A DNA stretch of 64,000 nucleotides. Source: Anthoceros angustus. Its lineage: Eukaryota; Plantae; Anthocerotophyta. The position numbers and the translations under genes were made by a program. Below the pieces are notes generated by a model, which was not told the origin of the DNA, ran no database searches, and saw nothing but the letters and a program-made list of their open reading frames with translations. Positions 13,164-63,883 of this stretch are shown here, in pieces (position 1 is the first letter of the stretch; every line of letters starts with the position of its first letter). Location of the stretch: assembly GCA_010909165.1 (NCBI GenBank), contig MU008161.1, forward strand, positions 620,001 through 684,000. Reading direction: 5' to 3'.

Positions 13164-16100
13164 TGTGGCGGGACTTTTCTTTGATGGCCGGCAGCGCGCC
13201 ACAATCCGTGTCGTTGTAGGAAGAAGTCCGTTCCCAAAGGGAATGATAGGCCCGTTTACGCGTTTGGTGATTCTTAGTCCTTAGCGCTCGTTCGGTCTCA
13301 ACTCACACATACTCCTAACTACTCTGGCGTTCCGTCTGAGGCCGGTATGGCCAAGCGTTTGAGACCCGTTCGCGTCCGTATCGTTCACATACATCCTTCA
13401 CGCATCCGGTCCTTTCCTCTCTCCTCTCACGCTACACTCTTGATCTTAGAAAAGGCAGTTCTGTGATCAGGACCTCCTCGTCGTTCCGGGCCTCTCCGGC
13501 TCTCACACCCTCGGAGTTCCTCCGGCTCACGCGTTCGGTCCGTTCGGTGTCGGGCGGCTCGGGCGAGCCGGATCACCGATCACCCTTCCTGCACACACCA
13601 CAGCGTTAAGTCGTCACGGGACCTTGATCAATCTCCCGGGCATCGTGCACCTTTCGGTGACTCGGGACTCACGTTAGCAAGAAGACTCACAAAGGTGCAG
13701 AGCGGCATCAACACCAAGAGAGATGCTTTACTAGGCGGCCCCTCTTATCTGCGCCCAAGGTGGCGTCTTTATTACCCCTATTACGGCGATAGCCATTTCG
13801 GTATACCTAATCGGCCTACCGCCTATCCCCCTATCTCCTTCGCCAGGTGTGGGAAGGTCACAGGCCCCTCCTCGGAATGGGTGGTCAATCCCCGTCGGCG
13901 GTTGTGGTGCACCCAATCGGATGATCCGTGAGGCGGGGCCCCTCCTCTCCGGAATCACAGCCGGGTTGGGCTCGTGATCGACAACGCCGTTACCACGGCG
14001 TCATCCTCCTGGCCCCTCCACAGGTCCTTGGCCGGTGGGGCCACCGCTCGGCTCCCCTAGCGTAAGTCGAAGGGGCTCCTCCTTCTTCTTGCGGCCGGTC
14101 CTCGAGGTCTGTCTCGACTCACAGAACTTGAGTCAGGCTTATTCGGTCGGCTAGGTCAGACCTTGTCTCAGGTCCGGACCTCGGTCGGTTGTTCCGGACT
14201 TAGTCGGACTTGAGTCCGGACTTGAGTCGGACTTATTCAGTCCGGACTTGAGGTCCGGCCTCCCTCGAGTCGGACAAAGTCCGGACTCCACGCCCCGGGT
14301 TTCCTCCCTCACGGGACTCCTCCGTGGCTCTCCTCGAAGTCCTCCATGTTCCCGATCGCCCGGTGACTCGCCGTTGGCCCCTCCTTCCATGGTGAGGTGC
14401 GGGGTGCTTACCTCGATCGCATCCGCTCCCTCGTTCTGCTCCTCGGTTGCTCCTCTCCGCTCCGTCATCTCAAAGCGGGGCCACTAGGGTCCCTGTCTTG
14501 TCCCGTGGCCTTCATCTCCTTGAGCCTTCCGGTCCGTCCCGTTTGCGGCGGCGTCGAGGCTTCTCGCCCCGGGAGCTCGGCGTGGTAATAGGCAAAGTCA
14601 GATCGACTTGTTGGTGCCTCTTCCACGTGTGCGGGCACCGATACTCCCTCGCCATAAGTGTTAGGCGTCTTGCTTTCTTGTTGGGCCACCTCTCTGCCCA
14701 GTTGTGTGGGCCGGGTATCACGTGAGGCTACAAGGCGGCCTCGGTCACCTCCTGCATTTGCAGTGCTCCCTTTGCTCCGGCTCCGTCGTTTCCTTTCCGC
14801 CATGACTTACCGCCATAGCGCGGCGTTCCCTTCCGCCTTTCTCGGTGGACCGGCTTCTTTTACTTCCGTGCTCGCGCTCCGTTCATTACGGCCTTTAGCT
14901 CATGACTCCCTCTCAGGCGGTGGATACCTCCGTCCGACTCGGGACTTCCTCCGGCTCATACGCAGCAGCGTCCAACTCCTTGGATAGTCGCGATTTTCCT
15001 CCGTCTTGAGCCAGACGGGCACTCTTTCGTGCTCGGTGGATTCTCTGAGAATCACTGCTTGCTCAAGCGCATCTTGGGTTGTAGCTCAGCGTGTCCTTCA
15101 TCCATCTGCTGCGCCTCCTTCTACCTCCGGTGCCGGAGATCCCCTATCTCCCGAGTCTTGGCCCTTACTGCTCCATAGCCGCTTTGTGCGGCCTTGAGTT
15201 AGCCTCGGTCTGCGTGTCTCTCCACGGTTCGATCACGTCATGGTGATCCGGTCGCTCTTCGTGACTTGGCTCCTTCGCCGCCTTTACAGGCCTCGCCCAC
15301 TTGGCCCTCTGGCCGGGCCGCCTCCGCCCGGTCGAGCTCTCTGCTTGTGCCGGGCCTCTTCCGCCTCTGCTGCGCTTCCCCTCTTAGCAGGTCCTCCGCG
15401 CTTGGGCCTCTGAGCTTGCTTGGTGTGCTGGTGAAGAACCTTAACCCGATCTGTGAACCGCCGGGCCTCGCTCCGCCACCCGGCGTTCCCTTCCTCGATC
15501 CGGCGAGGACTCCGCCTTTCCTTTGCCCCTCGGCGCCTTCACTTGCTCTTGGGTTCCACCATCCTCCTCCGGTGGCCTCCACTTCACAGGTCTTCTCCTG
15601 TACCACGAGACCCCAAAGCATTCCGTCCATGGTAGCAGGACTCGCCGTGTTTCTTCCACGGCCGCGAGTGAGGCCCCACAAAGTCCGTAGTGGGGCCGGC
15701 ATTTCTCGATCCAGGACCTCCATACCTTGATCGGAGTAAGTCGGTGGGTTCTCGGACCTAATCGGGACCCTCGGGTCACAGTGGTGGTCGAGTCTCACCC
15801 TCTTGGCCCTCTTGGCCTCTAACTCCTTTGTGCCCTCTTTCTCCTCAGGGCTCGGAGGAGGTGAGGGGTCGGGAGCAAGCTCTTTTGCCCCTTCACAGCC
15901 GGGGCAGGACCGGCTCGAGGTGGGGCTGGCCGGTGACCTCCTGCTCCTTGGGCCACGTCCTTCGCCCTCCTTACGCCTCTTGACCTCTTGCCACTCCGTG
16001 GGCGGGGTAATCCGGCACCTCGAGGTCTTTGCGTTGGTAAGCGGCACCGTCTTCGCCTCTTGGCTCCCAGTTCGTCGGGGCTCGGCGGTGGTTGTTGTGG

Positions 16101-19100
16101 CTGTTGTTACACGGTGCGGGCCGCCAGCGCCCTCGGCATCGGCTCCTCCTTGCGTGCTCGGAGGGCACCAAAAGGAGGAAGAATCGCCTCCCAAACTTCC
16201 ACAGGTGGTGAGGGGTTCGCTCGGGCGTATGGAGTCGAATCCTCCCGATCGTCCTCCTCCGAGTCCCCAGGGCGACCCCCACCTCAGGCGCCCTTGCACG
16301 CTCTACTTACAGGGCCTCCGGCCCCCGGGCGCCCGCTCAAGCTCTCCTCCTTGAGAGCTCGAAATGTCCCCATACATGAATCGGTATGGGGTCGGCCCGA
16401 TGGCGAGGCTTCTCGCTCCTTAGCTTGCGTGCCTCCCCAGGCAGGCGAAGATAATCCTTCCCAGTCCGCTCTCTTCCCATGGGCGCATGCGAGAATACCA
16501 GCAGGTTATCACCAAGGTGATCCACCTTGGTGGCGAGTTCAATGGACAATGATCCGGGCTACGCCCTTACTCGGATCCGGCGGATCGGATATCAACCATC
16601 CGTTGGTTGTCCGCTGCGTTCGAGCCTCGGCATCGCGTGGCGCCCTATCTTCGCCTTAAGGGGCTCGGCACCACGCCCCTTCTTCCTCCTTGGGCGGTTG
16701 TAGGCCATCCTCGGGACCTCAAGGTCCATCGCCTCGGGTCCTCCGGAGGTTCTTGGATCGGACCTCCTTGTTGATCGCCGCCCGGCATCTTCGGGCAAAC
16801 TCCGGACTAGAGTAGCGTTGTCAAAGGTCGAGACCATTTGGAACACGTCGGATGCCACTCCTGCACCAATTCCCTTCCTCCGGCCGGGGCCGAAGTCCGG
16901 ATAGCGCGGGTCACAATGTTGCGCTCCACGGTCCATGGCTCCCAGACTTCCGTCGGCTTTTGGGTGCCATTGCTTTCTCCTCCTCTTGTTCTTTGTAGGC
17001 TGGCGGCGGTCGGCGCACGATGTTCCTCCCGCGCGTTATTGCTCCAACCTTGTGATGCGCCACGCTCTAAAAGGCGCCCAAAAAATGCGAGCGGATTGCG
17101 GGCGCAAGGCTGTGAGGGATGCGGAGGCTGCCGTGAAATGACCTCCTCCTTGGCGCGCTTGTGGAAATGCTGGGCGGAAGGCGCCTCTTCGTTGTCCGTG
17201 CGCGAGTGCATGGCTTACGACCCGCTTACTGCGGCCTTACGCCCGCGCGGGCGTGAATACTGCCTGCGGCCTGCAGCAAGTTACGGTCACGGCCTCGCAT
17301 GCCCGACCTCCACTCGGGGCGTCCACGTGGCGCCGCCTCGTCATCCTCACGCCTCGCTCCTGGGTTACTTTCCTGGCGTACTTATCCTATTTTGACACAG
17401 GTGGGTTCGGACTTATCCGTTACTCGGCGTAGTCAGCTTGCCATAGTGGTGCAGGGGTCCGTTGTTCACTCCAGTCGGAGTATACTCGGAGCCTCGTCCA
17501 AGCGCTACCCCAATTTATTCCTATTCCTCCTTTATTTATCCTTCAATCCTAAAAAACAAAACCCTACTTATTTCCTAACTCCCTGGAAGTGCATAGCCCA
17601 CATACTCCCTTCTCATCCGCTACGCCTCCGCCAACACTAAGCATGATACTTCTTCACCGCCACCCGCTCACCCGAGTGGGCAACAGCCTCCATCTAGCCG
17701 TGAATGGATTTTGCTGTCATATACTTGCACCACTTGGTACGGACCCATCCATCTCGTGTGAAGTTTGCTCGAAAATGCATGTGACGACTATCATAAGGAG
17801 GGCCAGTCCCTTCCTTTACATACTCCCGAGGCGATCGGCCAAATCTTCACCGGTTTTGCACCAATCGCATCTTCACCGAGCTTCTTCCCTGCCCCTCCGT
17901 AGGCCGTGACAAACCCCAAGAGTCGCCGAGCCGGCTTTCCTCCTCCGCTGCCTTCCATCATTACTCGAAAAGTGGGCACTTCGCCTATTATTCCAGGTCC
18001 AAAATGTATAGGGACTCTTGCTTCTTCTTGGGGATACTCTTCCTCGCTAGAGACCTCCTTCTTCTTCGGGACGACCGCCCTCTGAGACACCTCCGATTGG
18101 TCTCCTCTCAAGACTCTTCCTCCTGAGTCTCGAACCCCGCTTTCTTCTTCTTCTTGCCTCCTTGAGCGGATTTCTTTATCCTCCTCGATGTAGCGATTCC
18201 TCGTAGTGCCGCCTCGACCGCCTTTGCCCACCTTCGCCCGGCCAGCAGACGTGCTCGCCATGGGTTTGGCTAGACCGCCGCCAACCACCGTGCAGCATCG
18301 TGGTATGGGTTGGATGCCGATCCTCGTGCATAGAACTGGCGCCGCTCTCCTTCTTCCTCGCCTGATTTTCCAACTTTGATAATACATACCCCTCCCGGTC
18401 GATCCTCGAAACCGCTCTAAGAAGGCATTTTCAAAGCTTCAAACGAGGCGGGGCATTCTCCTGGTCGATTTCTCCGACCATTGAGCACTGCCCCTCTGAG
18501 AACCCCTTGAAAAGCTGGATGAGTGGCCGCCTCCTCCGCTGAAGTTGGCTTTGGACACGAAGTCCTCCACAAAGGTCTCCGTGATCCCGCCTCCTTCTTC
18601 CCTCCGAATATGGAGTACGCTTGTTTGGTCGAGGTAGGGGCCATGGTCAGCCATCAAAGGCGTGGCGCCCTACCTTCTTCCGCTACGCCCTCGCACTTCG
18701 TGACTGCCTTGGTGGTCCGACACGACCACGCCTCTCCTCCTCGATCGACGCGCTGGGTTTGACGCCTCTCTCTCCCTGCTCGGAGAGCACGCGAGGTGAC
18801 CACGTCCGATCCTCCCGACGGTTCACTCTGACCGCCGACCGCCACGCATTCACTTACCTTCTTCCTAAGGACGACTTTCACGCATCGATTTCATTCCGCA
18901 ACGCGCCAAAATGTGGCGTGACTTTGCGATGGCCAGGCCGCACAATCCCGTGTCGTAGGAAGAAGTCCGCTCAAGGGAATGATAGGCCCGCATCGCTGCT
19001 TCTGTGTGATTCTCACCCGCTTAGCGCTGCTCACCCTCAACACACACATACTCCTAACTACTCACAACGCTCACCGACAGCCCTGTGATGGCTAAACGCT

Positions 19101-22100
19101 TAGGAGGACCCGTCAGATCGCTCACATACATCCTCACGATCCTTCTTTCCTCTCTCCTCTCACGCTACACTCTTCGCCTTAGAAAAGACGCTGGTGCCGA
19201 CCTCCTCCGCTGCTCCGCCTCCGTCCGGCTCTACACCCTCCCGAGTTCCTCCGGCCACGCTCCGCTGCGGACCGCTGCCCGGACGAGCACGATCACCGCC
19301 ACCCTTCCCCGCACACACCACAACGCTAAGTCCGCCACGGACCTTGATCAATCTCCCGAGCTGCCGTGCTCGCCTGACTCAGACTCACGTTAGCAAGAAG
19401 ACTCACAAAGGTCCGCAAGAACGCGCATCAACACCAAGAGAAAGATGCTTTACTAGAGCACCTCTTCTTATATCGCCCAAGGTGGCGCCTTTATTACACC
19501 CCTATTCGAGCCGAGATAGCAGATACCCTAATCCGCCTACCATCCTCCCCCTATCTCCTTCGCCGACCGCTGGAAGGTCCTGGCCCCGCCGGAATGGGTG
19601 GTCCAACTCGTCCCCGACATTGTGGTGCACCCAATCGGATGATCCGTGAGGCGGGCCCTCCTCTCCCAATCCTTATACGGCGTGGTTCGACAACCGCCAC
19701 ACGACGCCATCCTCCTCGGCCCCTCGGGTCCTTCACGGGGCCACACGCCATCGGCCCTAGCGTAAGTCGGGCTCCTCCATCGCCGCCCGGCCCCTCGAGG
19801 TCTGCCTCGACTCAACTCGTGAGTCCGCTTATTTCGGGTCCGGCCAGGTCCGACCTTGCTCGGGTCCGGACCTCGTGGTCCGGATGACACGGGGTCCTGA
19901 CGGTCCGGACTTACACGGTCCGACTTGTGGTCCGGACTTATTACCGAGGTCCGACTGTGGTCCGGCCTCCCGGACAGTCCGACGCCCACCTGCTCTCCTC
20001 ACGGACTCCTCCGTGGCTCTCCTCAAGTCCTCCCACTGCTCCCGATCGCCTGGGTGACTCTGGCCCTCCTTCCATGGTGAGGTGCGGGGTGCTTACCGGA
20101 TCCGCCCGCCCTCGCTCGCCTCCTCCTGCTCCTCCGCCTCCCGCTATCTCCAAACAGGCCACTAGGGTCCCTGCTGCCCCTGCTGGCCTTCATCTCCTTC
20201 TCGAGCCTTCCAGGGTCCGTCTGCTGCGCCGGGCCGCCGAGAGGCTTCTATCGCCTTCGTGGAGCTCAGTAATAGGCAAAGTCCGAATCGACTTGTTGAA
20301 TTGCTCTTCCACGGGTGCCCGAGCACCCGATACTCCCTCCGCCATAAGTGTTCCGGAGCCGGGCGCTTGTTGGGCCACCTCTCCCGCCAGATTTGACACC
20401 GGTCAGATCACGCGAGGCTACAAGGCGGCCTCACACCTCCCCGCACTGCTGCCCCGCCCAGCCTCCGCTGCTTCCTTCCATCGCCACCACTCCGCCATAG
20501 CGCAGCTGCTCCTTCCGCCTTTCTCACTGGACCAGTTTCTCGCTTCCGGCTCGCCTCCGCTCATTCTGCCTTTACCGCCACCCTCCAAAGGCCGACACCG
20601 TCCGACCCCGACTTCCTCAGCCTTCAGAGCCCGGCAACGCCCAACTCGATAGTCGCCGATTTTCCTCCGCCTTCGACGGAGCCGAGGCACTGCTTCGCTC
20701 GAGGTCGTGGATTCTCTCGCTGAGAATCACCGCCGCCTCCGACGATCTTGGAGTTGTAGCTCCAGGTCCTTGCTGCCTCCATCCGCCGCCGCCTTCTACT
20801 GCACTGCATTTCTGAGATCCCTATCTCCCGAGGCTCGCCTCCATAGCCGCGCCTTCGAGTTAGCCTCGCCGTCCGACTCTTCCACCGGCCCGATCACGCC
20901 TCAGTGATCCTGCCGCTTGCCGCGCTCCGACCGCTTTTACCTGGCCTCGCCCACTTGGCGCCGCTTAGCCGGCCGCCTCCGCCAGTCCCGAGCTCACAGT
21001 GCCCGGCCTCTTCCGCCTCCCCGCCTTCGCCGCAAAGGTCCTCCGCCCGCTAGCTTGCTTCACTGCTCAGACAAAAGAACCTCCCCCCCGAACCGCCTCG
21101 GCCCCGGCTCACCCTTCCTCGATCCGAGCGAGGGACTCCGCCTTTCCTTTGCCCCTCCGCCTTCACTTGCTCTTGAGTTCCACCATCCTCCTCCGGTGGC
21201 CTCCACTTCGGGTCTTCTCCACTGCACTGAGACCCCAAAGCATTCCTCCAGACGGTAGCTGCCGTGTTTCTTCCACACGTGAGGCCCCACAAAGTCCGTG
21301 AGGGAGCCGCATTTCTCATCCAAGGACCTCCATACCCGAGTAAGTCCGACTGGGTTCTCCTGACCTAATCAGACCTCAGTCCCGAGTGGTGAGGTCCGAG
21401 TCTCACCCTCTTGGCCCTCTTGGCCTCTAACTCCTTTGTGCCCTCTTTCTCCTGGGCCTTGAGGAGGTGAGGGGGTCCGGAGCAAGTCTTTTGCCCCTTC
21501 CTGGGACAGTGACCGGGCCGGGCCGCTGACCTCCTCGCCTCCTTGGGCCACGCCCTTTCTCGCCTCCACCGCCTGCCTCTTGCCACCTGCAAGGTGGTGG
21601 GTACGCACCTTCCGAGGTGCGGCTGGTAGGCGGCACTGCCTTCCGCCTCGGCCCCGCCGAGTTCGTGGCCGCAGCCCGCCGCCGTGGTTGACGCTGGTGC
21701 CGGAGCCGCCAACGCCTCCAGACGCCTCCCCGTGCCTACCGCCCGCACCAAAAGGAGGAAGGGAATCGCCTCCCAAACTTCCCTGGTGAGGGGTTCGCCC
21801 AGACGATGGAGTCCGAATCCCTCCGCCCTCCTCCCGAGTCCGCTGGTCTTCAAGGACGACCCCCCACCCGCGCCTTGCACGCCTACTCGGGTGGCCTCCC
21901 GAGCGCCTGCCAAGCTCTCCCTCCTTCAGAGCTCAAATGTCCCCATACATGAATCGTATGGGTCACCGATGGCGAGGCTTCGCCCTTAGCTTGCGCTCCT
22001 CGATCGAACCGGCGAAGATAATCCTTCCTCACTTCCTACCGGAGCGCATGCAGAATACTAACAGTTATCACCAAGGTGATCCACCTTGAGCGAGTGTTCC

Positions 22101-27900: not shown

Positions 27901-30900
27901 TCAAGAAATAGCTCCGTTCCTAGCGAAGTAGTTAGTTGTATAGTACCTTTCCCTTCAATATCAACATGTCTGTCGTCTGTGACAATCACCACTTGTTCAG
28001 AGTAGTCTAGCACAAAAGTGGTGAATAAATCTCCATTGTTGCAGATATTAGCGGACGCGCCTGAATCAAGGTATCAAAGGGATGTCGAGTCTCTAGATGT
28101 AGAGAAACACACAGTCATCACAGAAGGGATGGTGCGTATAGGGCTCTCAGCTACAAGGTATGATTCAGGGGGCCGGGATTGTCTAGGCTCCCCTACCTTT
28201 TTCTTACGACAATCTTTCTCCCAATTTCTTTCGATGAGGCACCGATTACAAGCTCCCTTTTTCTTCCTTTTGCTGTTCTGACCTTTGCTTATGTCATTGA
28301 CATTAAACCTGCCTGGTTTCTTGTTCCACTTGCCCTTTCTCTCCGTAAGAAGGACCTTGTCATGTTGATTAGAGGTTGAACTTGCATTTAACCTCCTCAT
28401 TGTTTCCTCCTGCAGCATAGCTCCAGCTTTTTGAGCCACTGTTATGGATGGTGTTTGATCTGTAGCTGTTGCCGCTGAAGTTGCAAGAAGGGGCCCATTG
28501 TGCAGCGACACGAAACCTTGCCAGCTAGGTGGTAGGCTAGAGAATAGTTGGGCAGCGACATCCAATTCAGACATGGTGGAGTTAAGAAGAGCAAGCTGGG
28601 ATCTCAAGTGTCTAAACTTGCCCAGGTAAGCCGCAACGCTCTCCTTCTCCTTAAGCCGCAGTGAGTAGAAACTCATCCTGGCTTCCACCAAGGTCGTGAT
28701 ATTTTGTACTTTATACAAGTTGGCCAGATTATCCCAAATCTTCTTGGCACTGTCAATGCCAACAGCGTGATCCATCTTGGACTCATCGAGACCGCTAATG
28801 ATAAAGTACTTCGCGGTCTTGTTACCTTTGTTCCACTCATCGATAGTTTGTTGTGATGGGGGTTCCGGTCCTGATGTAGAGTTTCCCAGTACGGGAGCTT
28901 GTTGCTTCCCAGAGACAAATTCCCATACGTCCTTCAGATCTAGAACTGCTTTCATCCTGATAGCCCCAATATTGTACTTGGTGCCATTGAAATGGTCATG
29001 TGTTCTCCCGAATCTCTTTTGTGGTATGATATACATTGGTTGTCATGGAATTGCCTGAGGGAGATGTTCTTGACATCTTCTTATCGTTATAGGTAGACCC
29101 AAGGTATTATGATGCCTTGGACACAAGCTATCACGATAAGGGGAAGGAATAATTAGGTCTAAATCATTAGATAAAATACCCTAAATATTAAAATAAAGTC
29201 AAATATGGCCTTCAACTATCGGAATGTTGAAGACGCCAGTTGGTGGCGTTTCACGCCTTACCAACGTGCCCGCTCAAATCTCAGGAGGTGAGCTGGAGAC
29301 TTGCCGCGAGGCGAGAGCTTCTTGCGAGGGCCTAAGTAAATTGATGAGAACAGTAATCTTGATATGAAGTTGATTGATCACTTCCAAAAGTTCCCCGGAT
29401 GTCAATCGCGTGTCCTCTTTACTGTAAGTGGTAGGTTCTCCTTTACCAAATAAAGCCCTTTGGGCTCTTTCCGCGGTCGAGTTTGCGAGGTTCTGTTGAG
29501 ATGGCGGCATAGGGCACCAATTACAAGCTCCCTTTTCTTCCTTTTCTTCGACCTTTGCTTATGTCATTGACATTAAACCCCTTTTCTTGTTCCACTTGCC
29601 CTTTCTCTCCGTAAGAAGGACCTTGTCATGTTGATTAGAGGTTGAACTTGCATTTAACCTCCTCATTGTTTCCTCCTGCAAAGATAGCTCCGACTATTTG
29701 AGCCCTTTATTGGATGGTGTTTGATCTGTTGCCTGAAGTTGCAAGAAGGGGCCATTGTGCGTGACACGAAACCTTGCCACTAGGTGGTAGGCTAGAGAAT
29801 AGTTGGGCGTGACATCCAATTCAGACATGGTGGAGTTAAGAAGAGCAAGCTGGGATCTCAAGTGTCTAAACTTGCCCAAGTAGCCACGCCTCCTTCTCCT
29901 TAAGCCGCGGTGGTAGAAACTCATCACAGCTTCCACCAAGGTCGTGACATTTTGTACTTTATACAAGTTGGCCAGATTATCCCAAATCTTCTTGGCACTG
30001 TCAATGCCAACAGCGTGATCCATCATGGACTCATCAAGCTAATGATAAAGTACTTGTCTTGTTACCTTTGTTCCACTCATCGATAGTTTGTTGTGATGGG
30101 GTTTCCACGATGAGAGTTTCGCACGGAGCTTGTTTCTTCGACAAATTCCCATACGTCCTTTAGATCTAGAGCGCTTTCATCCGATAGCCCCAATATTGTA
30201 CTTGGTGCCATTGAAATGGTCATGTTCTCTGAATTCGGTGCTACTTTGTGTGGTATGATATACATTGGTTGTCATGGAATTGCACGAGGAGATGTTCTTG
30301 ACATCTTCTTATAGGTAGACCCAAGGTATTATGATGCCTTGGACACAAGCTATCACGATAAGAGGAAAGAATAATTAGGTCTAAATCATTAGATAATATA
30401 TTCTAAATATTAAAATAAAGTCAAATATGGCCTTCAACTATCGGAATGTTGAAGACGCCAGTTGGTGGCGTTTCACGCCTTACCAACGTGCCCGCTCAAA
30501 TCTCAGTGGAGACCGGGCGAGAGCTTCTTCGAGGGCCTAGTAGATTGATGAGATGAATCTTGATATGAAGTTGATTGATCACTTCCAAAAGTTCCCCGGA
30601 TGTCAATCGCGTGTCCTCTTTACTGTAAGTGGTAGGTTCTCCTTTACCAAATAAAGCCCTTTGGGCTCTTTCCGCGGTCGAGTTTGCGAGGTTCCTGTTG
30701 AGATGGCGATGCATAGGGCACCAATTTTTGTAACTGAATGCTCTGGCCTTGACCACGGCTTGGAGGCGCCCATGCTAGCCGCACATGACTCCGAGATTGT
30801 TCCCTCATGGTTGTGGTAGGAGGAACCACACGCTGTGCCATTACCCAGTCTCCTTTGTCATTTCTTATTTCATGGACAAGTCAGAGTTTGCATTGCGCAT

Positions 30901-43330: not shown

Positions 43331-45419
43331 CAGATGTGGGAGCAAGCCCAGGAGTTGCAGGCAAGGAGAGTAGGAATCAAGGTATGGAAATAAGTCGGGA
43401 CAGAGTTGGTGGACAGACATGTACGGGCTGGTGCATAGTTTTTGAGTGCGGAGTTTTTATGTCGGAGACTCAAACATGTGATGTTATGTACACGGGAGAC
43501 CACTTATTTGGGCCACATCACCTGAGCATTGCTGCAATCCAGGGCTCCAGCATTGCTGCAATGCTCTTCAGCTAGGTAGTCACTTTCAACTGGCTCCCCT
43601 GTCACGGGTCGGGGACCGGAGTGGATGGAGTTACATGTCAAGCGGCCCTCTTAATGGCCAAGACTCCAAACTCAGGGAGGCCACGTCATTATCCGTAGGC
43701 AAAGGGCCAACTTGGACTTGCATGTGAGACAAACGGAACGCTTCTCTGCGGTCTTTGGGGCCATGATTCCTAACCCTGTACCGCGCGGTTTCTTTTCTCA
43801 AATCTATGTCGTGCGGTTCTTCGTTGATAGGGTGAAGTGTGTACCAGGAATATGTAGGAGGAATAGTATGTGTGTTTGTGATGAATGTCAGACTTGAACC
43901 CCAGGACGAATGGACTCGATCGTGCGGGTAGGCCGACGGACTCCGTGCATCTTGGCCAACAATGTCGATTGGCCTTCGTCTGCGTCCTCTAAACTATTTC
44001 CTTTTTCCGTGCCACCCTTAAAGCAAAGTATGCGGTCTTTGGTGGTCCTGGCGAATTCTATGATTGAACAAAACAAGTGGCTATGGCTGATTATATGACT
44101 GAAAAAACAAGCAACTATATTGACAAATTGGCCATGACTGAAAAAGACTGGTGGCAATGGCCAATTTTATGGCTAAAAAAACAAACAACTATATCAACAT
44201 CTACTCGTGATGGTATGCCAAAAATCCCGAGAAAAGCTATTTTGGTTGAGTGAATCTCCTTGGAAGATGGTACCACTGTAACCATCGAATTTTCTTGCTT
44301 GGAAAATTATTACTTGTGGCTCAAGCATGAAAAGTGGCCAAATTTTTTGTGCCAAACCTGCATAGAGGGCAAAGATGCCCTTCTCCATGGACATGGGAAC
44401 CTCTTACCTATTGAGCTTGAAAAAAAGTGGCTCATGAGAAGGAGGCTTTTTATTGTTCCCCGCACATGTGTTTGAAGTATGGACGATGATGGTAATGGTT
44501 AAGCAAAGATCAGGCTGAGGAGATTTTTTAATTAAAAGATAAAAAAATTATTAAGAGAAAACAACACTGGAGTACGAGGTTCCGTCTGTCAAATAATTTA
44601 GTAAATAATTTAGTGGAGAAAAACATTTTATGTTTCTTTGCAGTTGCAGGTAAGGATCGAGATCCGAATCCAAGCCCTCTTGGACCAGCGCTAGCGCATG
44701 ACCAATTCGGCCATTCTCACCTCACATCACGTCTCGGAAGGCATTGCCTACCAACGGAATTGATTTACCCCGGCAAGGGTGGACGACTTGAGTGAATAGA
44801 GTCACGTGTCAAGCGGCTCCTAACTAAGACACGTTCAAACGAATAGACTCCAACGCCCTGTTCAAAGTTCAAACGGCGACTGGGGTCAAGAAAAAGAGTG
44901 AAAGTGCGTCAACTGAGCAAGAACAGACCGACCACCAATTCATCGATCTGGCTGTGGGCCGTGGCAGGCTGCAGCGACAGCGATTTCTTGCTGTTGCATA
45001 TATATAGTGTAAGCGCAAGATGCAGTCCATTGTAGCCAAAAGCCAAGGATCCTTGACCCATCCATCCACCTATCAATCGGCATTCCTTTGAATTCCGGAC
45101 TTGCATCTAAGTCAATGTCATCTCCAACATGAGCAAACTCGAATGGTAGATGCACACAAGTAGCACCGTGAAAGGCAGTTTTTCCGGTCTACACTGTACG
45201 GACAGACAAGTGAAGGTATCTAGATGGTGTCTCGGTGGCATGCGCTCAGATCTCGATACTCATCGACTTCCAAGCTGGCATGGAGGAGTTTGTTTTTCGC
45301 GACCTATACAAAAAAAGCAGCGTACAGGGACCGGGCGGCATCCGGGTTCCTGCTCTCCAGTACATTTGCTGCACTGGGACGCATTAATTTAATTCATAAC
45401 CATTGGTTGATTCAGCAAC

Positions 45420-45860
45420 GGGCAAGTAGTGCTATGGCTTTACAGCAGCAACAAGCCTAATGCTGAAACTGATTGAATGATGTTTGCAAGTGAGTAATGC
45501 AGGTCACAGGGAATCACATTTGTGAGATTCAAGCTGTTCCCGTGTAGTGAGAACTTGCCACACACGCACCCTCACCATGTTGTCGGGCGAGGCACTCCAA
45601 GTTGGCTTTGTCGACACCAATGGTATGCATGTGAATTGGGCCAGTGTTGGTGCATTTGATGATGAATTTTTGTGGGCTCAAATTCATTCTCACCTGCGAA
45701 TGATTTTGTAGTGGGAACTGCACACATCAACATCCTAAAACCGGGCAATGTGACCATTTTCCCTCGTGGAATGTTGCATTTTGAGTTGAACGTGGGAGCG
45801 GAGGATGCAGAGTTTATTTCTTCACTTAATAGCGAGAACCCTGGCTCTTGGCTCTTTGGT
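45420..45860 (+). pseudogene. Germin-like cupin fragment, copy 1
   Basis: GITFVRFKLFPCSENLPHTHP / LTMLSGEALQVGFVDTNG / ILKPGNVTIFPRGMLHFELNVG..ISSLNSENPG; germin box 1 is broken after HTHP. Confidence 0.8.
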
Positions 45861-46249
45861 AGGCCTCTATTTGGTAGAATTTTGCAATTGAGAATCTTTG
45901 GGTTTGCTATTCATCTTATGACCCATCCATCCACCTATCAATCGGCATTCCTTTGAATTCGGACTTGCATCTAAGTCAATGTCATCTCCAACATGAGCAA
46001 ACTCGAATGGTAGATGCACAAGTAGCACCGTGAAAGGCGGTTTTCGGTCTACAACCTTTGCGACAAGTGAAGGTATCTAGATGGTGTCTCGGTGGCATGC
46101 TCGGATCTCGATACTCATCGACTGGTATGGCATGGAGGAGTTTGTTTTCGCGACCTATACAAAAAGCGTCTGAGGGACGGGCGGCATCCGGGTTCTGCTC
46201 TCCGAACATTCGACCGGGACGCATTAATTTAATTCATAACCATTGGTTG

Positions 46250-46700
46250 ATTCAGAAACGGGCAAGTAGTCTATGGCTTTCGGCAACAAGCCTAATCTGG
46301 CCCGGTTGAATGATGTTTGCAAGTGAGTAATGCAGGTCACAGGGAATCACATTTGTGAGATTCAAGCTGTTCCCGTGTAGTGAGAACTTGCCACACACGC
46401 ACCCTCACCATGTTGTCGGGCGAGGCACTCCAAGTTGGCTTTGTCGACACCAATGGTATGCATGTGAATTGGGCCAGTGTTGGTGCATTTGATGATGAAT
46501 TTTTGTGGGCTCAAATTCATTCTCACCTGCGAATGATTTTGTAGTGGGAACTGCACACATCAACATCCTAAAACCGGGCAATGTGACCATTTTCCCTCGT
46601 GGAATGTTGCATTTTGAGTTGAACGTGGGAGCGGAGGATGCAGAGTTTATTTCTTCACTTAATAGCGAGAACCCTGGCTCTTGGCTCTTTGGTAGGCCTC
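46250..46700 (+). pseudogene. Germin-like cupin fragment, copy 2
   Basis: Same as copy 1. The provided ORFs 46362/46405/46505 are identical or nearly identical to 45529/45572/45672 at an 833-bp offset. Confidence 0.8.
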
Positions 46701-57174: not shown

Positions 57175-60100
57175 TCAAAATATTGAGTGTGGTTTCAAAA
57201 CCATGTACAACGCCAAACATACAAAAGCAATCAAAAAAAGGAACTTCCAAAATTGGGGAATACTACGGCCAGAATTGTTTTCAATGTTGAACTTCTCTTC
57301 AGTGTTCAAGTTCTCTTCAGTGTTCAAGTTCTTTTTCTGTTTCTTGGATTTCTTCTTGTTGCTTTTCTTGTGATTTCCCTTGAGTGCATTAGGTATTGCT
57401 GAACTTGCAATTGGTAGTGCCATAGTTGTTCCAGCTTGAGTCATTGATGGCAATGCAACCTCAGCTAATATATCACTACCTGTAATAGCATTCATATCGT
57501 CCACATGTGTTGTGTCATTATTAGTCTGCTCCATGAGACCACCGTTGGATTTCTTCTTTTTCCTTTTCTTGTGCTTTTCCTGCGATACATTGTGAACTGT
57601 TGAACTTGCAATTGGTACCACTATAGTTGTTCCAGCTTGAGTCATTGATGGCAATGCAACCTCATCTGATATATCACCACCTATAATAGCATTCATATCG
57701 TCCACGTGTGCTGTGTCATTATTAGTCTGTTCCATGAGACCACTGTTGGATTTTTTCTTTTTCCTTTTCTTGCGCTTTTCCTGCGATGCATTCTGAACTG
57801 CAGAACTTGCAATTGGTACCGATATAGTTGTTCCAGCTTGAGTCATTGATGCCAATGGAACCTCATCTGATATATCACCACTTGTGATAGCATTCATATC
57901 GTCCACATGTGTTGTGTCATTATTTGTCTGTTCTGTGTGACCATTGCTGAAACTCTTCTCAATGACAAGTTTCTTACGCCGTCTTTTCTGCACAGTGATC
58001 CAGGAAATTGAGTCCACTTCACTTGTGATAGTTTCTTCATTCTTAGTAATGCCAGACCTTGTCAAGTTATTATTGTCTGCTGACTGTTGTGAGAGAATAA
58101 TTCCAAGTGAGTCACCAATGACAGTTTCTTCTATTTCAATATTCTCACTTTCAACCAATGAGTCGACAGCCCCTGCAGTAATTGATTCCTGAACACTGTA
58201 TGTTGATGGCAGAACAACCTCAGCTAATATATCATCACCTGTGATAGCATTCATATCTTCCACATGTGTTGTGTCATTATTTGTTTGTTCCGTGAGACCA
58301 GTGAGACCACCGTTGAAACTCTTCTCAGTGGCAAGTTTCTTACACAATGCAGGAATTGCATCAAGTTCACCTGTGATAGTTTCTTCATTCTCAATAATGT
58401 GAGACTTTGCCAAGTTATTGTTGTCTGCTGATTGTTGAGAGTGTCTAATACCAAGTGAGTCACCAATGACAGGTTCTTCTATTTCAATATTCTCACTTTC
58501 AACCAATGAGTCGACAGCCCCTGCAGTAATTGATTCCTGAACACTGTATGTTGATGGCAGAACAACCTCAGCTAATATATCATCACCTGTGATAGCATTC
58601 ATATCTTCCACATGTGTTGTGTCATTATTTGTTTGTTCCGTGAGACCAGTGAGACCACCGTTGAAACTCTTCTCAGTGGCAAGTTTCTTACACAATGCAG
58701 GAATTGCATCAAGTTCACCTGTGATAGTTTCTTCATTCTCAATAATGTGAGACTTTGCCAAGTTATTGTTGTCTGCTGATTGTTGAGAGTGTCTAATACC
58801 AAGTGAGTCACCAATGACAGGTTCTTCTATTTCAATATTCTCACTTTCAACCAATGAGTCGACAGACCCTGCAGTAATTGACTCTTGAACGCTGTACTCC
58901 AACAATTTGTTGTCACCTCTTAATTCTTGTGAGGGAATAATAGCAAGAGGACCACCAACAACGACTTTCTCTACTTCAATGTGCTCATTTTGGACCAACA
59001 CATCAATGCCTTCATGGCCTCCTGATGCTTCTGAGATAATACCCTTAACGACGAGGTCCTCTGTTTCAATTTGCCCATTTTCAACCAACACTTCGACATC
59101 GTCATGGGCTTGTGATTCTTCTGAGATAGAAACAGAGCCATCAACAATGAGTTCTTCTATTTCTGTATTCTCACTTCCGACCAACACATCGACGTCGTCA
59201 TAGCCTCTTGGTTCTTCTGAGATAGAAACAGTGCCATTAGCAATGAGTTCCTCTATTTCTGTGTTCTCACTTTCGACCAACACATCGACGTCGTCATAGC
59301 CTCTTGGTTCTTCTGAAATAGAAACAGAGCCATCAGCAAGGAGTTCTTCTATTTCTGTATTCTCACTTCCGACCAACACATCGACGTCGTCATTCTCACT
59401 TCCGACCAACACATCGACGTCGTCATTCTCACTTCCGACCAACACATCGACGTCGTCATAGCCTCTGGGATCTTCTAAGATAGAATCAGAGCCGTCAGCA
59501 ATGAGTTCTTCTATTTCTATGTTCTCACTTCCGACCAACACATCGACGTCATCATAGCCTCTTGGTTCTTCTGAGATAGAAACAGAGCCATCAGAAACGA
59601 GTTCTTCTATTTCCGTGTTCTCACTTTCGACCAACACATCGGCATCGTCATAGCCTCTTGGTTCTTCTGAGATAGAAACAGAGCCATCAGTACCAAGTTC
59701 TTCTATTTGTGTGTTCTCACTTTCGACCAACACATCGACGTCGTCATGGCCTCTTGGTTCTTCTGAGATAGAAATAGAGTCATCAACACCAAGTTCTACT
59801 GTTTCAATGTTGGCACTTTCGACCAGCAGATCAATGTTGTCGTTGTCTCTTAATTCTTCTGAGATAGAAATAAGTAAAGATCCAACTAATATTTTATCAG
59901 TATGAATATGACCTTTTTTGACCCACACGTTGATGTTGTCATGGCCTCTTGGTTCTTCGGAGATAAAAATAGAGCCATCAACGTCAAGTTCTTTTGTATT
60001 TCCACATTTGACCAACACATCAATGTCATCGTCGCCTTTTGATTCTTTTAAGCCAAAAAGAAGTAGAGGTCCGACTAATATTTCTGGTTTGTCTTCAGGA

Positions 60101-60387
60101 GAATTGCTTAGAACTTCCTCCATAGTACCAATATCAATGCCAATAGAACGTTGTATCTCCAGTTTGTCTTCATGAGAATTGCTCATAACTTCCTCCATAG
60201 TGCCAATATCAACGCCAGTAGAACGTTGTATCTCCGGTTTGTCTTCATGAGAATTGCTCATAACTTCCTCCATAGTAGCAATATCAGTGCCAGTTGACAG
60301 TTGTGCGCTAATAGCTGACTTCTTTGTTCTATGACGCCGAAGCGGGCGTTTACGTTGTCTCTTTGTAGTGACAGGTGATGTCTCCAT
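57175..60387 (-). CDS. Orphan 1070-aa acidic, repeat-built protein with basic NLS-like clusters and a C-terminal transmembrane anchor
   Basis: Uninterrupted 3.2-kb ORF; all repeat periods (75, 96, 33, 348 and 201 bp) are multiples of 3; ends FWKFLFLIAFVCLALYMVL-KPHSIF*. No family recognised. Confidence 0.75.
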   Translation of the reverse strand: METSPVTTKRQRKRPLRRHRTKKSAISAQLSTGTDIATMEEVMSNSHEDKPEIQRSTGVDIGTMEEVMSNSHEDKLEIQRSIGIDIGTMEEVLSNSPEDKPEILVGPLLLFGLKESKGDDDIDVLVKCGNTKELDVDGSIFISEEPRGHDNINVWVKKGHIHTDKILVGSLLISISEELRDNDNIDLLVESANIETVELGVDDSISISEEPRGHDDVDVLVESENTQIEELGTDGSVSISEEPRGYDDADVLVESENTEIEELVSDGSVSISEEPRGYDDVDVLVGSENIEIEELIADGSDSILEDPRGYDDVDVLVGSENDDVDVLVGSENDDVDVLVGSENTEIEELLADGSVSISEEPRGYDDVDVLVESENTEIEELIANGTVSISEEPRGYDDVDVLVGSENTEIEELIVDGSVSISEESQAHDDVEVLVENGQIETEDLVVKGIISEASGGHEGIDVLVQNEHIEVEKVVVGGPLAIIPSQELRGDNKLLEYSVQESITAGSVDSLVESENIEIEEPVIGDSLGIRHSQQSADNNNLAKSHIIENEETITGELDAIPALCKKLATEKSFNGGLTGLTEQTNNDTTHVEDMNAITGDDILAEVVLPSTYSVQESITAGAVDSLVESENIEIEEPVIGDSLGIRHSQQSADNNNLAKSHIIENEETITGELDAIPALCKKLATEKSFNGGLTGLTEQTNNDTTHVEDMNAITGDDILAEVVLPSTYSVQESITAGAVDSLVESENIEIEETVIGDSLGIILSQQSADNNNLTRSGITKNEETITSEVDSISWITVQKRRRKKLVIEKSFSNGHTEQTNNDTTHVDDMNAITSGDISDEVPLASMTQAGTTISVPIASSAVQNASQEKRKKRKKKKSNSGLMEQTNNDTAHVDDMNAIIGGDISDEVALPSMTQAGTTIVVPIASSTVHNVSQEKHKKRKKKKSNGGLMEQTNNDTTHVDDMNAITGSDILAEVALPSMTQAGTTMALPIASSAIPNALKGNHKKSNKKKSKKQKKNLNTEENLNTEEKFNIENNSGRSIPQFWKFLFLIAFVCLALYMVLKPHSIF

Positions 60388-61069
60388 TGGCTACATCATT
60401 CAGAAATCAAATCAATCACCATATAAAATTTAGTGACACAATCCTTTGAATATGAGATTCCCACACTAGCATACTATCAACATTGAAATAAAACAAAAAA
60501 TAGACTTTGCATTGTCTACTCTGAAGAGTCTTACATAGTAATACAATGGAGAATATAGAGATAAAACACTTCAATATGTAGCAACAATACCAAACATAAG
60601 CTAACTCCAGTGGAATTGTTCAATGCATTATAGTGTCTCTAGGCTCATACATATATAGACCAGATTATATTTTATGTTCCGATAGACTGTGCATAGAATT
60701 ATTCGAGCCTTTTGTGTGATATAATAAGATAAAATATATTTAAAATCAGGCTCTAAGAAAAATTCAATAAAGATAAAAGAAATATAATAAAAGATATCCA
60801 TTTACCATTTCCCATCTTCCATTTTTCCTTCTTTCATATACATGAGAACTGAAAGAAGAGATCAAAAATGATGTTGAGAGTGGAAGCTGAGGCTCACCTA
60901 ATGGTGAAGGAATAGTGCTAAGCATCTAAGAGCTAGTGGAGTCTAAAGGGTGCCTCCAATTTATAACATGGATTGTAGATAAAGGTTGCAACTAAGAATT
61001 ATTTTTCAAAGCAAACTTGCCCTTTATGGCCTGAAATTTAGACGGTTCAATAATGGAAGTATCTTAGAC

Positions 61070-61395
61070 AGCCTTACAACTTAAAGTAGGCTACCAAAGG
61101 CTAAGGTCACACAATTAGAAATTAGCATCCACCGAATTAGAATCCACCGATCCGATCTAATATTCAACTGACATAAAAGTTGTTATAAACGCATGACCAC
61201 ATGTGGCTTACAACTTGAAGAAGGCCACCAAAGGCCAAGGTCACACAATTGGCATGACCACATTTGGCTTCCAACTAATCAGTGTCGCATCCACCGATCT
61301 AGGTTTCTTAACTTGAAAGTTATTATAAATACATGAGCACATGTAGCTTACAACTTGAAATAGCCCACCAAGGACTAAGGTCACACGATTGAAAA
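61070..61395. repeat. Degenerate ~130-bp tandem repeat x3
   Basis: cttacaactt(a/g)aa...caccaa(a)gg(c/a)(c/t)aaggtcacac(a/g)att at about 61075, 61207 and 61347. Confidence 0.75.
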
Positions 61396-61942
61396 TGGAT
61401 GGGGCGCTTAAATTTGATATCAAGGCGCCATGCATGCATGTGAACACTAGTGGTACTAGAGTTCTTTTAGTTAGTGAAAAGTTGGGGTCAACAATTGTGG
61501 TAATAGGGTTCGGTTCAGTTAGAGAAGAGTTCGGAAGAGTTCGGTTTGGTTACTCGATACCAGGCGGTCGTGACATCTGCTGGGTAGTCCCGGTGAAGCT
61601 GTGAAGGTTGCACACAAGCCCAAAGCTCCGAAGGTGAATTCGAGCATTTATTTTAGAGCATCAAATCAATCATTCCTAAATCGCATCTTACAATACAGCG
61701 GCAGTACAGCGTGCGAAGCGAACTTGCCTTGCGCTGCTTAAGTTCAACCTAAGCAGGGCTCCCAACTCGCTTTCCTCTTTTTCCTGTACACGGCGACGTG
61801 AGGGTTATCATATCCCCTGTCACGCCAGAAGCAAACAAATTGTTCGGGAATGGCGGCTTCCGAACAAGCAGACGATCCATTCGTCTGCAGAAGGCGAGAA
61901 TAATTGTATGCCGGGGAGCAAGCCTCCAGACATGCAGCGCTG

Positions 61943-63883
61943 TCAGACGGCCCCTTCCGGCTCGTGATGGAAAACCTGCGTCTGGTCGCGGTCGCCCAGG
62001 GGGAAGGCAGCTCTGGCCGACAGCTCGTCGACCATGGAGAGGATGTACTTGGTCTTGGCCACCAGTTCGATGAGCAGCGAGGAAAACTTGACGAAGGAGA
62101 GCGCAGCTATTCTTTGGATGGTAGCGTCCCACTCCGGCCCGAGGGAGTCGCTGTGCTGAAACAACTCGCTTTGCCAGTCGGGCCGGAAGGTGGCGTCCGC
62201 GGCATCTGACTCCTCTCCATCCGCATTCGGGTGCGGGTGCTGCGGGCGCGGAGGACGGGTGTTGGTGGCGCCGGGGATGGGAATGGCGTCACTGTTGCCG
62301 GTGCCGGGATTCGAGAGCGGGTTCTCCCCCAGGAGGATGCGGGAATGTTTCCGGATCTTGTGCTGGAGCAGCAGCGCGGCCTCCTCCGCCTTCTGCACCA
62401 CGTCCTGGTGCTGGTAGCGGCGCATGTTGAGGATGGTGGCTCCCATGAGCCGCAGGGCCACTCCGCACTGGTGCCCTATCACCTGCAGCTCGTCCCGGAA
62501 GATGAAGCGCACGAAGGGCGGGGCCTGGATCTCGGCCCGCAGGCAGGCGTCCAGCGCGATCACGTCGTAGAGCTCGTAGCGGAGGTTGTCGATGATGTCG
62601 GAATAGAGATCCCAGGGGAAGCCCCAGAAGAAATTCCCATGGCAGGGCTCGAAAGGCACGGCCTTCATCAGCTTGTCCACGTCCGAGTCGGCCGCCAGGA
62701 TCTCGTAGAAGCTGGTGAAGATGTTGTCCACTGGCGTCTTCTTGCGGAGGGTTTCGGGCACGGGGTCCAGGACGACGCCGTTGCAGTAGGCGCGGACGCA
62801 GCCCTCCACGACGTTGCCCGCCGTGTGGAAGTTCTTGGCCACCAGCTTGTTCACCATGTCCCCCGCGTACGCCGGCGCCAGGCTCAGATTCACCAGCAGC
62901 GCGATGAGGAAGCCGATGAAGATGGTCACCAGGCGCACCAGCGGCAGCGCCAGCTTCTCCCGGAACGCGCTCTTGGAGAGGATGAGCAGGTGGAAGGTGA
63001 TCATGGACATCACCACGGCGTAGTTCCACTTATCCTTGAACGGCCTCCGGAACTTGAACACGGTGGGGATGGCAGCCCCCAGGAACACGCAGAACACGAT
63101 GAAGTGCGTCTCGTAGCTCCCAAACGAGGGCGCCGACAGATTCACGAAGAGCGCCAACATCGCCGCCACCAGCGTCCCCACCGTCCGGTTCAGCCCCTTG
63201 CTGAAGGTGAGCCCCACGGAGGCCTCCAGCACGATGTCCACCGTCACCACGGCCCACACCCCGTTCTGGTCGATGTTGCTGTACAGCGGCGGCGGAAGCA
63301 GAGCATGGACGCCAGCGTGGCCGCCAGCCCGCCTTGAAGGGAAGGCCAGCGGCCCGCCCGCCATGGCCTGCACCTGTTTCCACTTCCGCGCCGGCCATGT
63401 CACGCACCCAGGCATCCCCATCTCGCGCCTCCCGCCGCTTCCAGCTCCTGTTGCGGCCTGGGCCCGGCCCGGGAACCGACCCCGGAATCGGCAGGGAGGA
63501 GAAGGAGGAGCCCTGACTGCTGGCCGCGAAGCGCCTCTGCTTGCGCCGGATGAGGGAGCGCTGGCGGGCCAAGCTCGGAATGCTGTCGGTGCCCCGCCTT
63601 CGATCTGCTCCTGCTGCTGCTGCTGCTGCTGATTCTGCTGCTGCTGCTGCTGATGCTGCTGCTGCTCCTGCTGCTGGAGGGAGTGGAGGAGGCCCAGCGT
63701 CTCCTTGTCCAGCTCTGTGTCCGCTTCTCCATTTTCCACCCACGCGCTGCTGTTGTAAGACCAGGATGGCGGGGGAGTGGTGGAGGGAGCGGAGGCGGAC
63801 CAGCGGCCCTGCAGCAGGGGCTGGGTGAGCGCGTCCGTGTGCCGGAAGCTTTCCATGGTCTCGACGCCGCTGCCTCTCTCCAC
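61943..63883 (-). CDS. ALMT: Aluminium-activated malate transporter (ALMT) family anion channel, intronless
   Basis: NGVWAVVTVDIVLEASVGLTFSKGLNRTVGTLVA; YAVVMSMITFHLLIL; RLVTIFIGFLIALLVNL..PAYAGD; FEPCHGNFFWGFPW; ALDACLRAEIQAP; C-terminal IAALSFVKFSSLLIELVAK. Confidence 0.95.
   Translation of the reverse strand: MERGSGVETMESFRHTDALTQPLLQGRWSASAPSTTPPPSWSYNSSAWVENGEADTELDKETLGLLHSLQQQEQQQHQQQQQQNQQQQQQQEQIEGGAPTAFRAWPASAPSSGASRGASRPAVRAPPSPPCRFRGRFPGRAQAATGAGSGGRREMGMPGCVTWPARKWKQVQAMAGGPLAFPSRRAGGHAGVHALLPPPLYSNIDQNGVWAVVTVDIVLEASVGLTFSKGLNRTVGTLVAAMLALFVNLSAPSFGSYETHFIVFCVFLGAAIPTVFKFRRPFKDKWNYAVVMSMITFHLLILSKSAFREKLALPLVRLVTIFIGFLIALLVNLSLAPAYAGDMVNKLVAKNFHTAGNVVEGCVRAYCNGVVLDPVPETLRKKTPVDNIFTSFYEILAADSDVDKLMKAVPFEPCHGNFFWGFPWDLYSDIIDNLRYELYDVIALDACLRAEIQAPPFVRFIFRDELQVIGHQCGVALRLMGATILNMRRYQHQDVVQKAEEAALLLQHKIRKHSRILLGENPLSNPGTGNSDAIPIPGATNTRPPRPQHPHPNADGEESDAADATFRPDWQSELFQHSDSLGPEWDATIQRIAALSFVKFSSLLIELVAKTKYILSMVDELSARAAFPLGDRDQTQVFHHEPEGAV
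63605..63676. repeat. Interrupted CAG microsatellite encoding poly-Gln in the ALMT N-terminus
   Basis: (CTG)n runs on + give QQQEQQQHQQQQQQNQQQQQQQEQ. Confidence 0.9.

Follow-up and report, generated by a model that had tools for sequence, protein, structure and literature searches.

Several kinds of membrane protein combine an anchor, such as a single C-terminal transmembrane domain (TMD), with a long arm, namely, the plant NEAPs, the plant KASH proteins (WIP, SINE, TIK) and the membrane-bound autophagy receptors that carry an ATG8-interacting motif (AIM, or LIR), such as ATI1/2 and the receptors of endoplasmic reticulum (ER) turnover, or ER-phagy (PMC8666691). Here, we describe an unannotated open reading frame (ORF) of 1070 codons that may add to this list, encoded on the minus strand of a 64,000-nucleotide stretch of Anthoceros angustus DNA (contig MU008161.1, positions 620,001 to 684,000), hereafter the window, to which all coordinates refer. 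We favour, with a probability of about 0.5, the view that it is a genuine, lineage-restricted bryophyte gene whose product would be a repeat-born, tail-anchored acidic membrane protein, possibly of the ER or nuclear envelope. It represents a new family within a familiar class.

With regard to the nuclear envelope, PMC7746247, citing Groves et al. 2019, reports that in plants a nuclear localisation signal (NLS) suffices for localisation to the inner nuclear membrane when it is added to a tail-anchored ER protein or joined in a chimera to a disordered region and a TMD, and that large nucleoplasmic domains are tolerated there. The NEAPs and the synthetic reporters of this design share with the Anthoceros protein a single C-terminal TMD, a nearby basic cluster of NLS type and a long nucleoplasmic or cytosolic arm. 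The NLS-then-TMD order of the NEAP family recurs here, four basic clusters preceding the TMD at residues (aa) 1045–1064, as motif matches only. However, NEAPs are coiled-coil proteins, whereas the repeat protein has no predicted helix outside its TMD, and no sequence similarity to NEAP1-3 was found in Pfam or among 1.84 billion protein representatives; the absent coiled coil and the lack of homology rule out membership of this family. The plant KASH proteins are likewise tail-anchored, pairing a short luminal tail with a cytosolic part that is long and poorly conserved, but the repeat protein ends in HSIF after a tail of 6 aa, and no homology to them was found. The terminal VPT (VVPT or TVPT) of the KASH luminal tail is required for SUN binding (PMC13200780), and a KASH identity was rejected since this ending is absent, as the initial annotation of the locus had already pointed out.

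An uninterrupted reading frame

The ORF and the signals at its two ends are as follows.

57175–60387, minus strand: complete ORF, from ATG to TGA, 1070 codons encoding 1070 aa (predicted 116 kDa, isoelectric point 4.29)
60391–60393, minus strand: in-frame stop codon, two codons upstream of the ATG
57011–57016, minus strand: AATAAA hexamer, about 160 nt past the stop, a possible poly(A) signal on a reading of the sequence only

The ORF frame contains no internal stop, whereas the remaining frames of the minus strand have 39 and 118 and those of the plus strand 52, 24 and 83, and base composition would predict about 74. Such an open frame has a chance of about 2e-14 even if every repeat unit enters the calculation a single time (about 445 codons). 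No other start codon stands between the in-frame upstream stop and the ATG, and the GC contents at the three codon positions (0.53/0.35/0.35) show an asymmetry as in coding DNA. The non-repeat ends of the ORF are open too and look gene-like, with the ATG, an N-terminal basic cluster, a terminal TMD, the stop and the AATAAA. A scan for bacterial-type promoters and terminators gave nothing, but is irrelevant to a eukaryote. Our reading of the ORF as a gene rests on the absence of stops and of nonsense changes, the frame-keeping repeat periods, the GC asymmetry, the ATG after a stop, the AATAAA and a normal gene neighbourhood; on these sequence features, it is probably a real, expressed gene.

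Nested repeat tiers of common descent

Tandem arrays were identified at the DNA level by Tandem Repeats Finder; they show 87–100% matches and almost no indels, and all lie inside the ORF.

60073–60297, minus strand: 3 x 25-aa repeat, aa 31–105 (period 75 nt, 2.9 copies at 60079–60294, 90% matches)
58945–60057, minus strand: array of 11 units of 30–33 aa each, with two extra 11-aa sub-repeats, aa 111–481 (period 96 nt, 59084–59870)
59359–59459, minus strand: 33-nt triplication (11 aa, DDVDVLVGSEN) within one 32-aa unit (3.1 copies, 100% identity)
57934–58896, minus strand: 3 x 116-aa repeat, aa 498–818 (period 348 nt, 3.0 copies at 57859–58896)
57331–57933, minus strand: 3 x 67-aa repeat, aa 819–1019 (period 201 nt, 2.9 copies at 57344–57933)
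57280–57332, minus strand: 18-nt repeat (6 aa, NLNTEE-like), the sixth tier (period 18 nt, 2.9 copies)

The six periods (75, 96, 33, 348, 201 and 18 nt) are all multiples of three. The initial annotation had described five nested tiers, and these were recovered in both DNA and protein; it did not list the 6-aa tier, and it counted 2.5 copies of the 116-aa repeat where the array holds 3.0, the third copy being diverged and 3 aa longer (119 aa). The 96-nt unit occurs in 11 register-true copies from 58989 to 60087, spaced by 90, 96, 99 or 162 nt, with the consensus SISEEPRGxDDVDVLVxSENIEIEELxVDGSV; the core of this array has a net charge near -0.3 per residue, although 29–31% of its residues are I, L or V. 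The 33-nt copies are identical throughout, so that the triplication must be very recent.

The tiers are not independent. DNA alignments show a fragment of the 32-aa unit within the 116-aa unit (score 52, where shuffles reach at most 28), and the 67-aa unit opens with the sequence that closes the 116-aa unit (score 127, where shuffles reach at most 25); the 25-aa unit is not related to the remaining tiers. These DNA segments, common to the 32-aa, 116-aa and 67-aa tiers, establish a repeat-born origin, and nested rounds of tandem duplication that kept the frame built about 85% of the coding body (aa 106–1019) from a few short seeds.

Frame is kept while residues drift

The repeat copies are separated by 206 distinct substitution events, of which 54 are synonymous and 152 non-synonymous; the neutral synonymous fraction being about 0.25, the overall omega is close to 1. 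None of these events is a nonsense change, whereas about 6.5 are expected from the consensus codons (Poisson p ~0.0015). Moreover, at least ten length-changing events, comprising the six periods and the unit variants of 30, 33, 30 and 119 aa, all keep the frame, for which the chance is about (1/3)^10. The proposal that the frame-keeping periods reflect selection is thus upheld by both counts, but the premise that the assembly is prone to indels could not be verified, for the neighbouring ALMT (646 codons) and BTB (564 codons) ORFs are uninterrupted.

Purifying selection on residues was not detected between the copies: the per-family omega values range from 0.56 to 1.07, none of them significant, differences are spread evenly over the three codon positions, with similar ratios in an alternative-frame control, and a per-column test on a 13-unit alignment showed conservation to be slightly, but not significantly, raised in the first half of the unit. 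Within the 32-aa unit, conservation is highest in the element D-psi-D-psi-L-V, whose final V is invariant. Openness, frame and composition are kept, while individual residues seem hardly constrained, a pattern that fits a young or fast-evolving repeat protein.

A predicted tail anchor and five basic clusters

Basic clusters were defined as windows with at least six K or R within 10 residues, and the protein contains five of them, followed by one hydrophobic segment and a short tail.

60319–60366, minus strand: N-terminal, NLS-like basic cluster, aa 8–23 (TKRQRKRPLRRHRTKK)
57955–57999, minus strand: basic cluster, aa 797–811 (ITVQKRRRKKLVIEK)
57739–57789, minus strand: basic cluster, aa 867–883, containing KRKKRKKKK
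57538–57585, minus strand: basic cluster, aa 935–950, containing KHKKRKKKK
57325–57372, minus strand: basic cluster, aa 1006–1021 (HKKSNKKKSKKQKKNL)
57196–57255, minus strand: single predicted transmembrane helix, aa 1045–1064 (QFWKFLFLIAFVCLALYMVL), mean Kyte-Doolittle (KD) hydropathy 2.08 over 20 residues
57178–57195, minus strand: C-terminal tail KPHSIF, 6 residues

The last four basic clusters all lie within 250 residues of the membrane anchor, and each 67-aa copy terminates in a K/R cluster. Two clusters hold the motif K(K/R)RK, which we take to be the class-1 monopartite NLS pattern in the classes of Kosugi et al. 2009.

The predicted TMD has a 16-residue apolar core with K on both flanks, and the sole 19-residue window with a KD mean above 1.6 falls at aa 1042–1070. 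No signal peptide or second TMD was found, the N-terminus being basic and polar and the hydrophobicity scan covering the whole protein. A single-sequence AlphaFold model agrees, its only helix being at aa 1046–1063 (predicted local distance difference test, pLDDT, 56–76), so that the helix and six-residue tail described in the initial annotation hold. With one C-terminal TMD and a short tail, the protein has the sequence features of the tail-anchored class, and this topology is the predicted one.

The same full-length model (pLDDT 36) places strands only at aa 120–480 and leaves aa 480–1044 unordered. When aa 174–481 are modelled alone, the result is all-beta, with one hairpin per unit (pLDDT 55, strand pLDDT 70–74, predicted template modelling score 0.58). 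The long disordered arm that had been proposed is therefore matched by the model for aa 480–1044, whereas for the 32-aa array it is weakly contradicted. AlphaFold is inclined to over-stack near-perfect repeats. A Foldseek search of the aa 174–481 model against the PDB returned nothing significant (best E 0.03, TM-score 0.15, which amounts to no real match); its top rows, none of them significant, are beta-solenoids. Proteins with beta-solenoids or stacked hairpins, such as the curli protein CsgA and beta-helix domains, share with the 32-aa unit a period-2 alternation of hydrophobic and polar residues, but the model likening the array to them has a pLDDT of only 55. With low confidence, the acidic array may form a stacked-hairpin rod.

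Taken together, these features allow the following mechanism to be proposed. The C-terminal helix would insert post-translationally, leaving about 1044 residues in the cytosol or nucleoplasm and 6 in the lumen. The exposed part would be charged in blocks: a basic N-terminal cluster would lead into the strongly acidic 32-aa array, extended or stacked as hairpins, and then into the unstructured region of 116-aa and 67-aa repeats with four polybasic clusters near the membrane. These clusters might act as importin-type NLSs, bind anionic lipid or chromatin, or both. The protein could then insert into the ER and accumulate at the nuclear envelope through importins, most plausibly at the inner nuclear membrane, an accumulation that we infer from the one N-terminal and four membrane-proximal NLS-like clusters. 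The acidic arm would serve as a length-tunable spacer or a polyvalent electrostatic scaffold, and what selection preserves would be the frame, the pattern of charges and the D-psi-D-psi-L-V strand element rather than single residues.

Searches for relatives and genomic neighbourhood

The repeat protein gave no Pfam match above noise, a word-index search with the whole protein found no relative, and none appeared among PDB sequences, viral contigs or metagenome contigs, nor did tblastn detect a paralogue across the 64-kb window. An exhaustive HMMER search among the 1.84 billion protein representatives, which uses local alignment with no length window and thus covers shorter, longer and fused relatives, yielded only two marginal matches. 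The first, a K-cluster repeat protein, was rejected as compositional (E = 7.5 under composition-adjusted BLASTP). The second, an ankyrin array (E = 3e-4, 23% identity), was rejected as a chance likeness of arrays of similar period; the repeat protein gives no Pfam ankyrin match even at E = 1, and its model is all-beta, not helical. An origin as an ORF of a transposable element (TE) or virus was also discarded, given the missing Pfam and viral-contig matches and the absence of repeats resembling long terminal repeats (LTRs) or terminal inverted repeats around the ORF (44–64 kb).

The protein is hence an orphan, as had been supposed, as far as these libraries reach. This status is only weakly calibrated, because the libraries hold neither the source genome nor its close kin, the nearest genome available being 55–59% identical in the ALMT protein; with omega close to 1, a repeat protein would be unrecognisable at that distance.

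Two neighbours flank the ORF on the same strand.

61943–63883, minus strand: ALMT malate-transporter ORF, 646 codons (Pfam E = 1e-75), 1.5 kb upstream
56457–56557, minus strand: U6 small nuclear RNA gene (Rfam RF00026, full length, 107.6 bits), 0.6 kb downstream

The closest relative of the ALMT is on Logan contig SRR33208241 (12.6 kb; 59% aa identity and 79–84% nucleotide identity in the coding region), followed by those of the liverwort Calypogeia fissa (55%), of Marchantia and Riccia (50%) and of Sphagnum (48%). Together with the U6 gene, these identities place the window in a plant, a bryophyte and probably a liverwort-like one; neither the ALMT nor the repeat protein retrieved itself from the libraries. 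The repeat ORF found no tblastn match at the ALMT loci of SRR33208241 and Calypogeia fissa. The former contig stops 533 nt past ALMT, and the latter locus has Nup160 fragments downstream; one being too short and the other having different neighbours, synteny is uninformative. SRR33208241 thus stands as a sequenced relative of the source species carrying the nearest ALMT.

The ALMT gene itself appears intronless, its Pfam domain forming one unbroken stretch at aa 199–622, while in Calypogeia the homologue has introns, its 576 aa spreading over 3.6 kb. The GC content at third codon positions (GC3) of the intronless ALMT is 0.91, only 1.5 kb from the repeat ORF at 0.35; a retrogene origin, or GC3 that varies extremely on a local scale, may explain this. 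In the spacer that separates the repeat ORF from the end of ALMT, 61073–61391 holds three tandem copies of 134–140 nt (83–91% identity), a possible promoter-region satellite or small TE. The U6 gene has a TATA-like element (tatttatatat) about 30 nt upstream, and its region is bracketed by a 56-nt direct repeat (54619–54674 and 56735–56790, 88% identity, 2.1 kb apart).

Elsewhere in the window, we found the uninterrupted BTB ORF of 564 codons and PPR, hexapeptide-transferase and copia-type gag ORFs. The gag ORF at 28074–29036 (minus strand) and a retroviral-polymerase SH3-like ORF at 5203–6039 (minus strand) are remnants of LTR retrotransposons. At 52395–54539 (plus strand) lies a 714-codon ORF with no Pfam match, polar and of low complexity, with the K/R cluster LKRKKTKKK. 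A tandem duplication of about 835–865 nt occupies 45054–46605, its blocks 97–100% identical, and a GC-rich block at about 14000–22000 (GC 0.59–0.65, AT skew to -0.39) has no tandem repeats and ORFs without Pfam matches.

Alternative explanations

Several observations weigh against a lineage-restricted gene for an ER or nuclear-envelope protein. As a gene, the ORF is a candidate proposed from its sequence. The GC3 of the ORF (0.35) lies at or below the non-coding background of 0.39–0.45, and the GC3 of the neighbours is far higher (0.50–0.91, with BTB at 0.58, PPR at 0.50 and ALMT at 0.91); such a low value would suit a gene that is very young or hardly expressed. A non-functional ORF would likewise show an omega of about 1 among its repeats. 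A possible splice acceptor (..tgatgtag|CCAATG) stands directly before the ATG, so that an upstream coding exon is conceivable. As to localisation, polybasic runs are not specific to nuclear import and, beside an anchor, can merely bind anionic lipids, and the short, K-flanked TMD points as much to the outer membrane of mitochondria or plastids as to the ER.

The first rival explanation is a proto-gene or non-functional ORF, in which an open unit was lengthened by minisatellite expansion and, with little or no expression, has not yet been broken. It would account for the neutral-looking omega and the even spread of changes over codon positions, for a GC3 matching non-coding DNA, for the lack of relatives among the protein representatives and the viral and metagenome contigs, and for an ORF of which about 85% is duplicated material and where the perfect 33-nt triplication shows an array still expanding. 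The missing nonsense changes, the length changes that are all multiples of three and the open, gene-like non-repeat ends speak against it, and we regard it as unlikely.

A second possibility concerns the target membrane only: the protein could be anchored in the outer membrane of mitochondria or plastids, or in peroxisomes, with its acidic arm in the cytosol. In tail-anchored proteins, moderate TMD length and hydrophobicity combined with positive flanks are linked to non-ER targets (PMC8644595), and the short 16-residue apolar core, the K on both flanks and the short, net-positive tail KPHSIF match these general rules. However, the tail contains neither the dibasic R-R/K/H-X motif nor the RK/ST motif of the same rules, the TMD with its flanks reaches 20 residues at a mean KD of 2.08, and the five NLS-like clusters would be left unexplained. 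Such a location seems rather improbable.

Alternatively, a longer, spliced gene might end in this ORF as its large last exon; exons further upstream would then add the domain that defines its function. The AG-ended site 3 nt before the ATG, although poor in polypyrimidine, the AT-rich, intron-like character of the upstream 500 nt and the fact that bryophyte genes are usually spliced, as is the Calypogeia ALMT, are consistent with this structure. Yet no coding-looking ORF is present in 60388–61940 on the minus strand, the in-frame stop upstream is followed by no start before this ATG, and the same features are explained by an intron in the 5' untranslated region; we consider a terminal exon quite improbable.

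The initial annotation had proposed a selective-autophagy receptor or a nuclear-envelope tether. The second half of this proposal is compatible with the five NLS-like clusters, from which a nuclear-envelope role may be argued, whereas the first half is unsupported. In its fullest form, the protein would be an ER-phagy or nucleophagy receptor and/or a binder of poly-SUMO, with arrays of YDDV and VDVLV setting its valency by repeat number. A membrane anchor with a long acidic arm does resemble known autophagy receptors. YDDV occurs exactly four times (aa 278, 310, 364 and 396), as had been counted, in an acidic context, and a psi-x-psi-psi-psi core with acidic flanks, of the SUMO-interacting motif (SIM) type, is present in 13 of the 13 units; both fit the loose published consensuses (PMC8666691; PMC12751080). 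Avidity through multiple SIMs is an established principle, as in RNF4, with which the protein shares repeated hydrophobic psi-x-psi-psi cores with acidic flanks, here in 13 copies (PMC12751080).

Against this, the [WFY]xx[LIV] cores are not enriched, with nine in the protein compared with 5.7 +/- 2.0 in composition-preserving shuffles, and these nine comprise four within the TMD, one WITV and the four YDDV, which all descend from a single motif and sit in the youngest and most similar units. The aromatic position, essential to an AIM, is Y in 5 of the 13 units (once as YDDA), H in 4 and N or D in 4, so that the residue is replaced in 8 of 13. SIM-type cores are fewer than expected, 16 compared with 28.5 +/- 5.1 in shuffles, and no column-specific constraint was detected. 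Known receptors carry a conserved, accessible core in an acidic context; the repeat protein resembles them in its anchor and its acidic, partly disordered arm with [WFY]xx[LIV], but its YDDV occurs in 4 of 13 units, neither enriched above shuffles nor conserved over the units, and no homology to them was found. Whereas RNF4 has four close SIMs in a short disordered N-terminus together with a RING, the cores here are 32 aa apart in a membrane-anchored protein with no catalytic domain and are, in a weak prediction, beta-paired; with low confidence, AlphaFold sets the motif within paired strands, where it would be unavailable. The conserved D-psi-D-psi-L-V with its invariant V is equally what a beta strand needs. 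Calls made on the AIM consensus alone yield false positives (PMC8666691), and the same caution applies to SIMs (PMC12751080). The motif counts are no evidence for a role in autophagy or SUMO binding, and with an omega of about 1 as well, the receptor explanation is very unlikely.

More doubtful still is the combined version, in which a tail-anchored protein, born from repeats and specific to its lineage, would sit in the inner nuclear membrane or ER and read poly-SUMO or ATG8 through 13 D-psi-D-psi-L-V elements working as SIMs, those of the youngest units also as AIMs; if it were true, valency would shift with the gain and loss of units, and the locus would be a living example of a linear-motif array made by a minisatellite.

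Significance

We therefore return to the lineage-restricted, tail-anchored protein as the favoured explanation. Its present value is that of a flagged candidate, one unannotated ORF, rather than a finding. If expressed, it would be a clear natural example of a large membrane protein that arose almost wholly by hierarchical in-frame tandem duplication, and one in which frame and charge pattern are selected without selection on residues, which bears on the origin of genes and of disordered or repeat scaffolds. In that case, the tail-anchored proteome of the plant nuclear envelope and ER, which is poorly known, would also gain a candidate specific to bryophytes.

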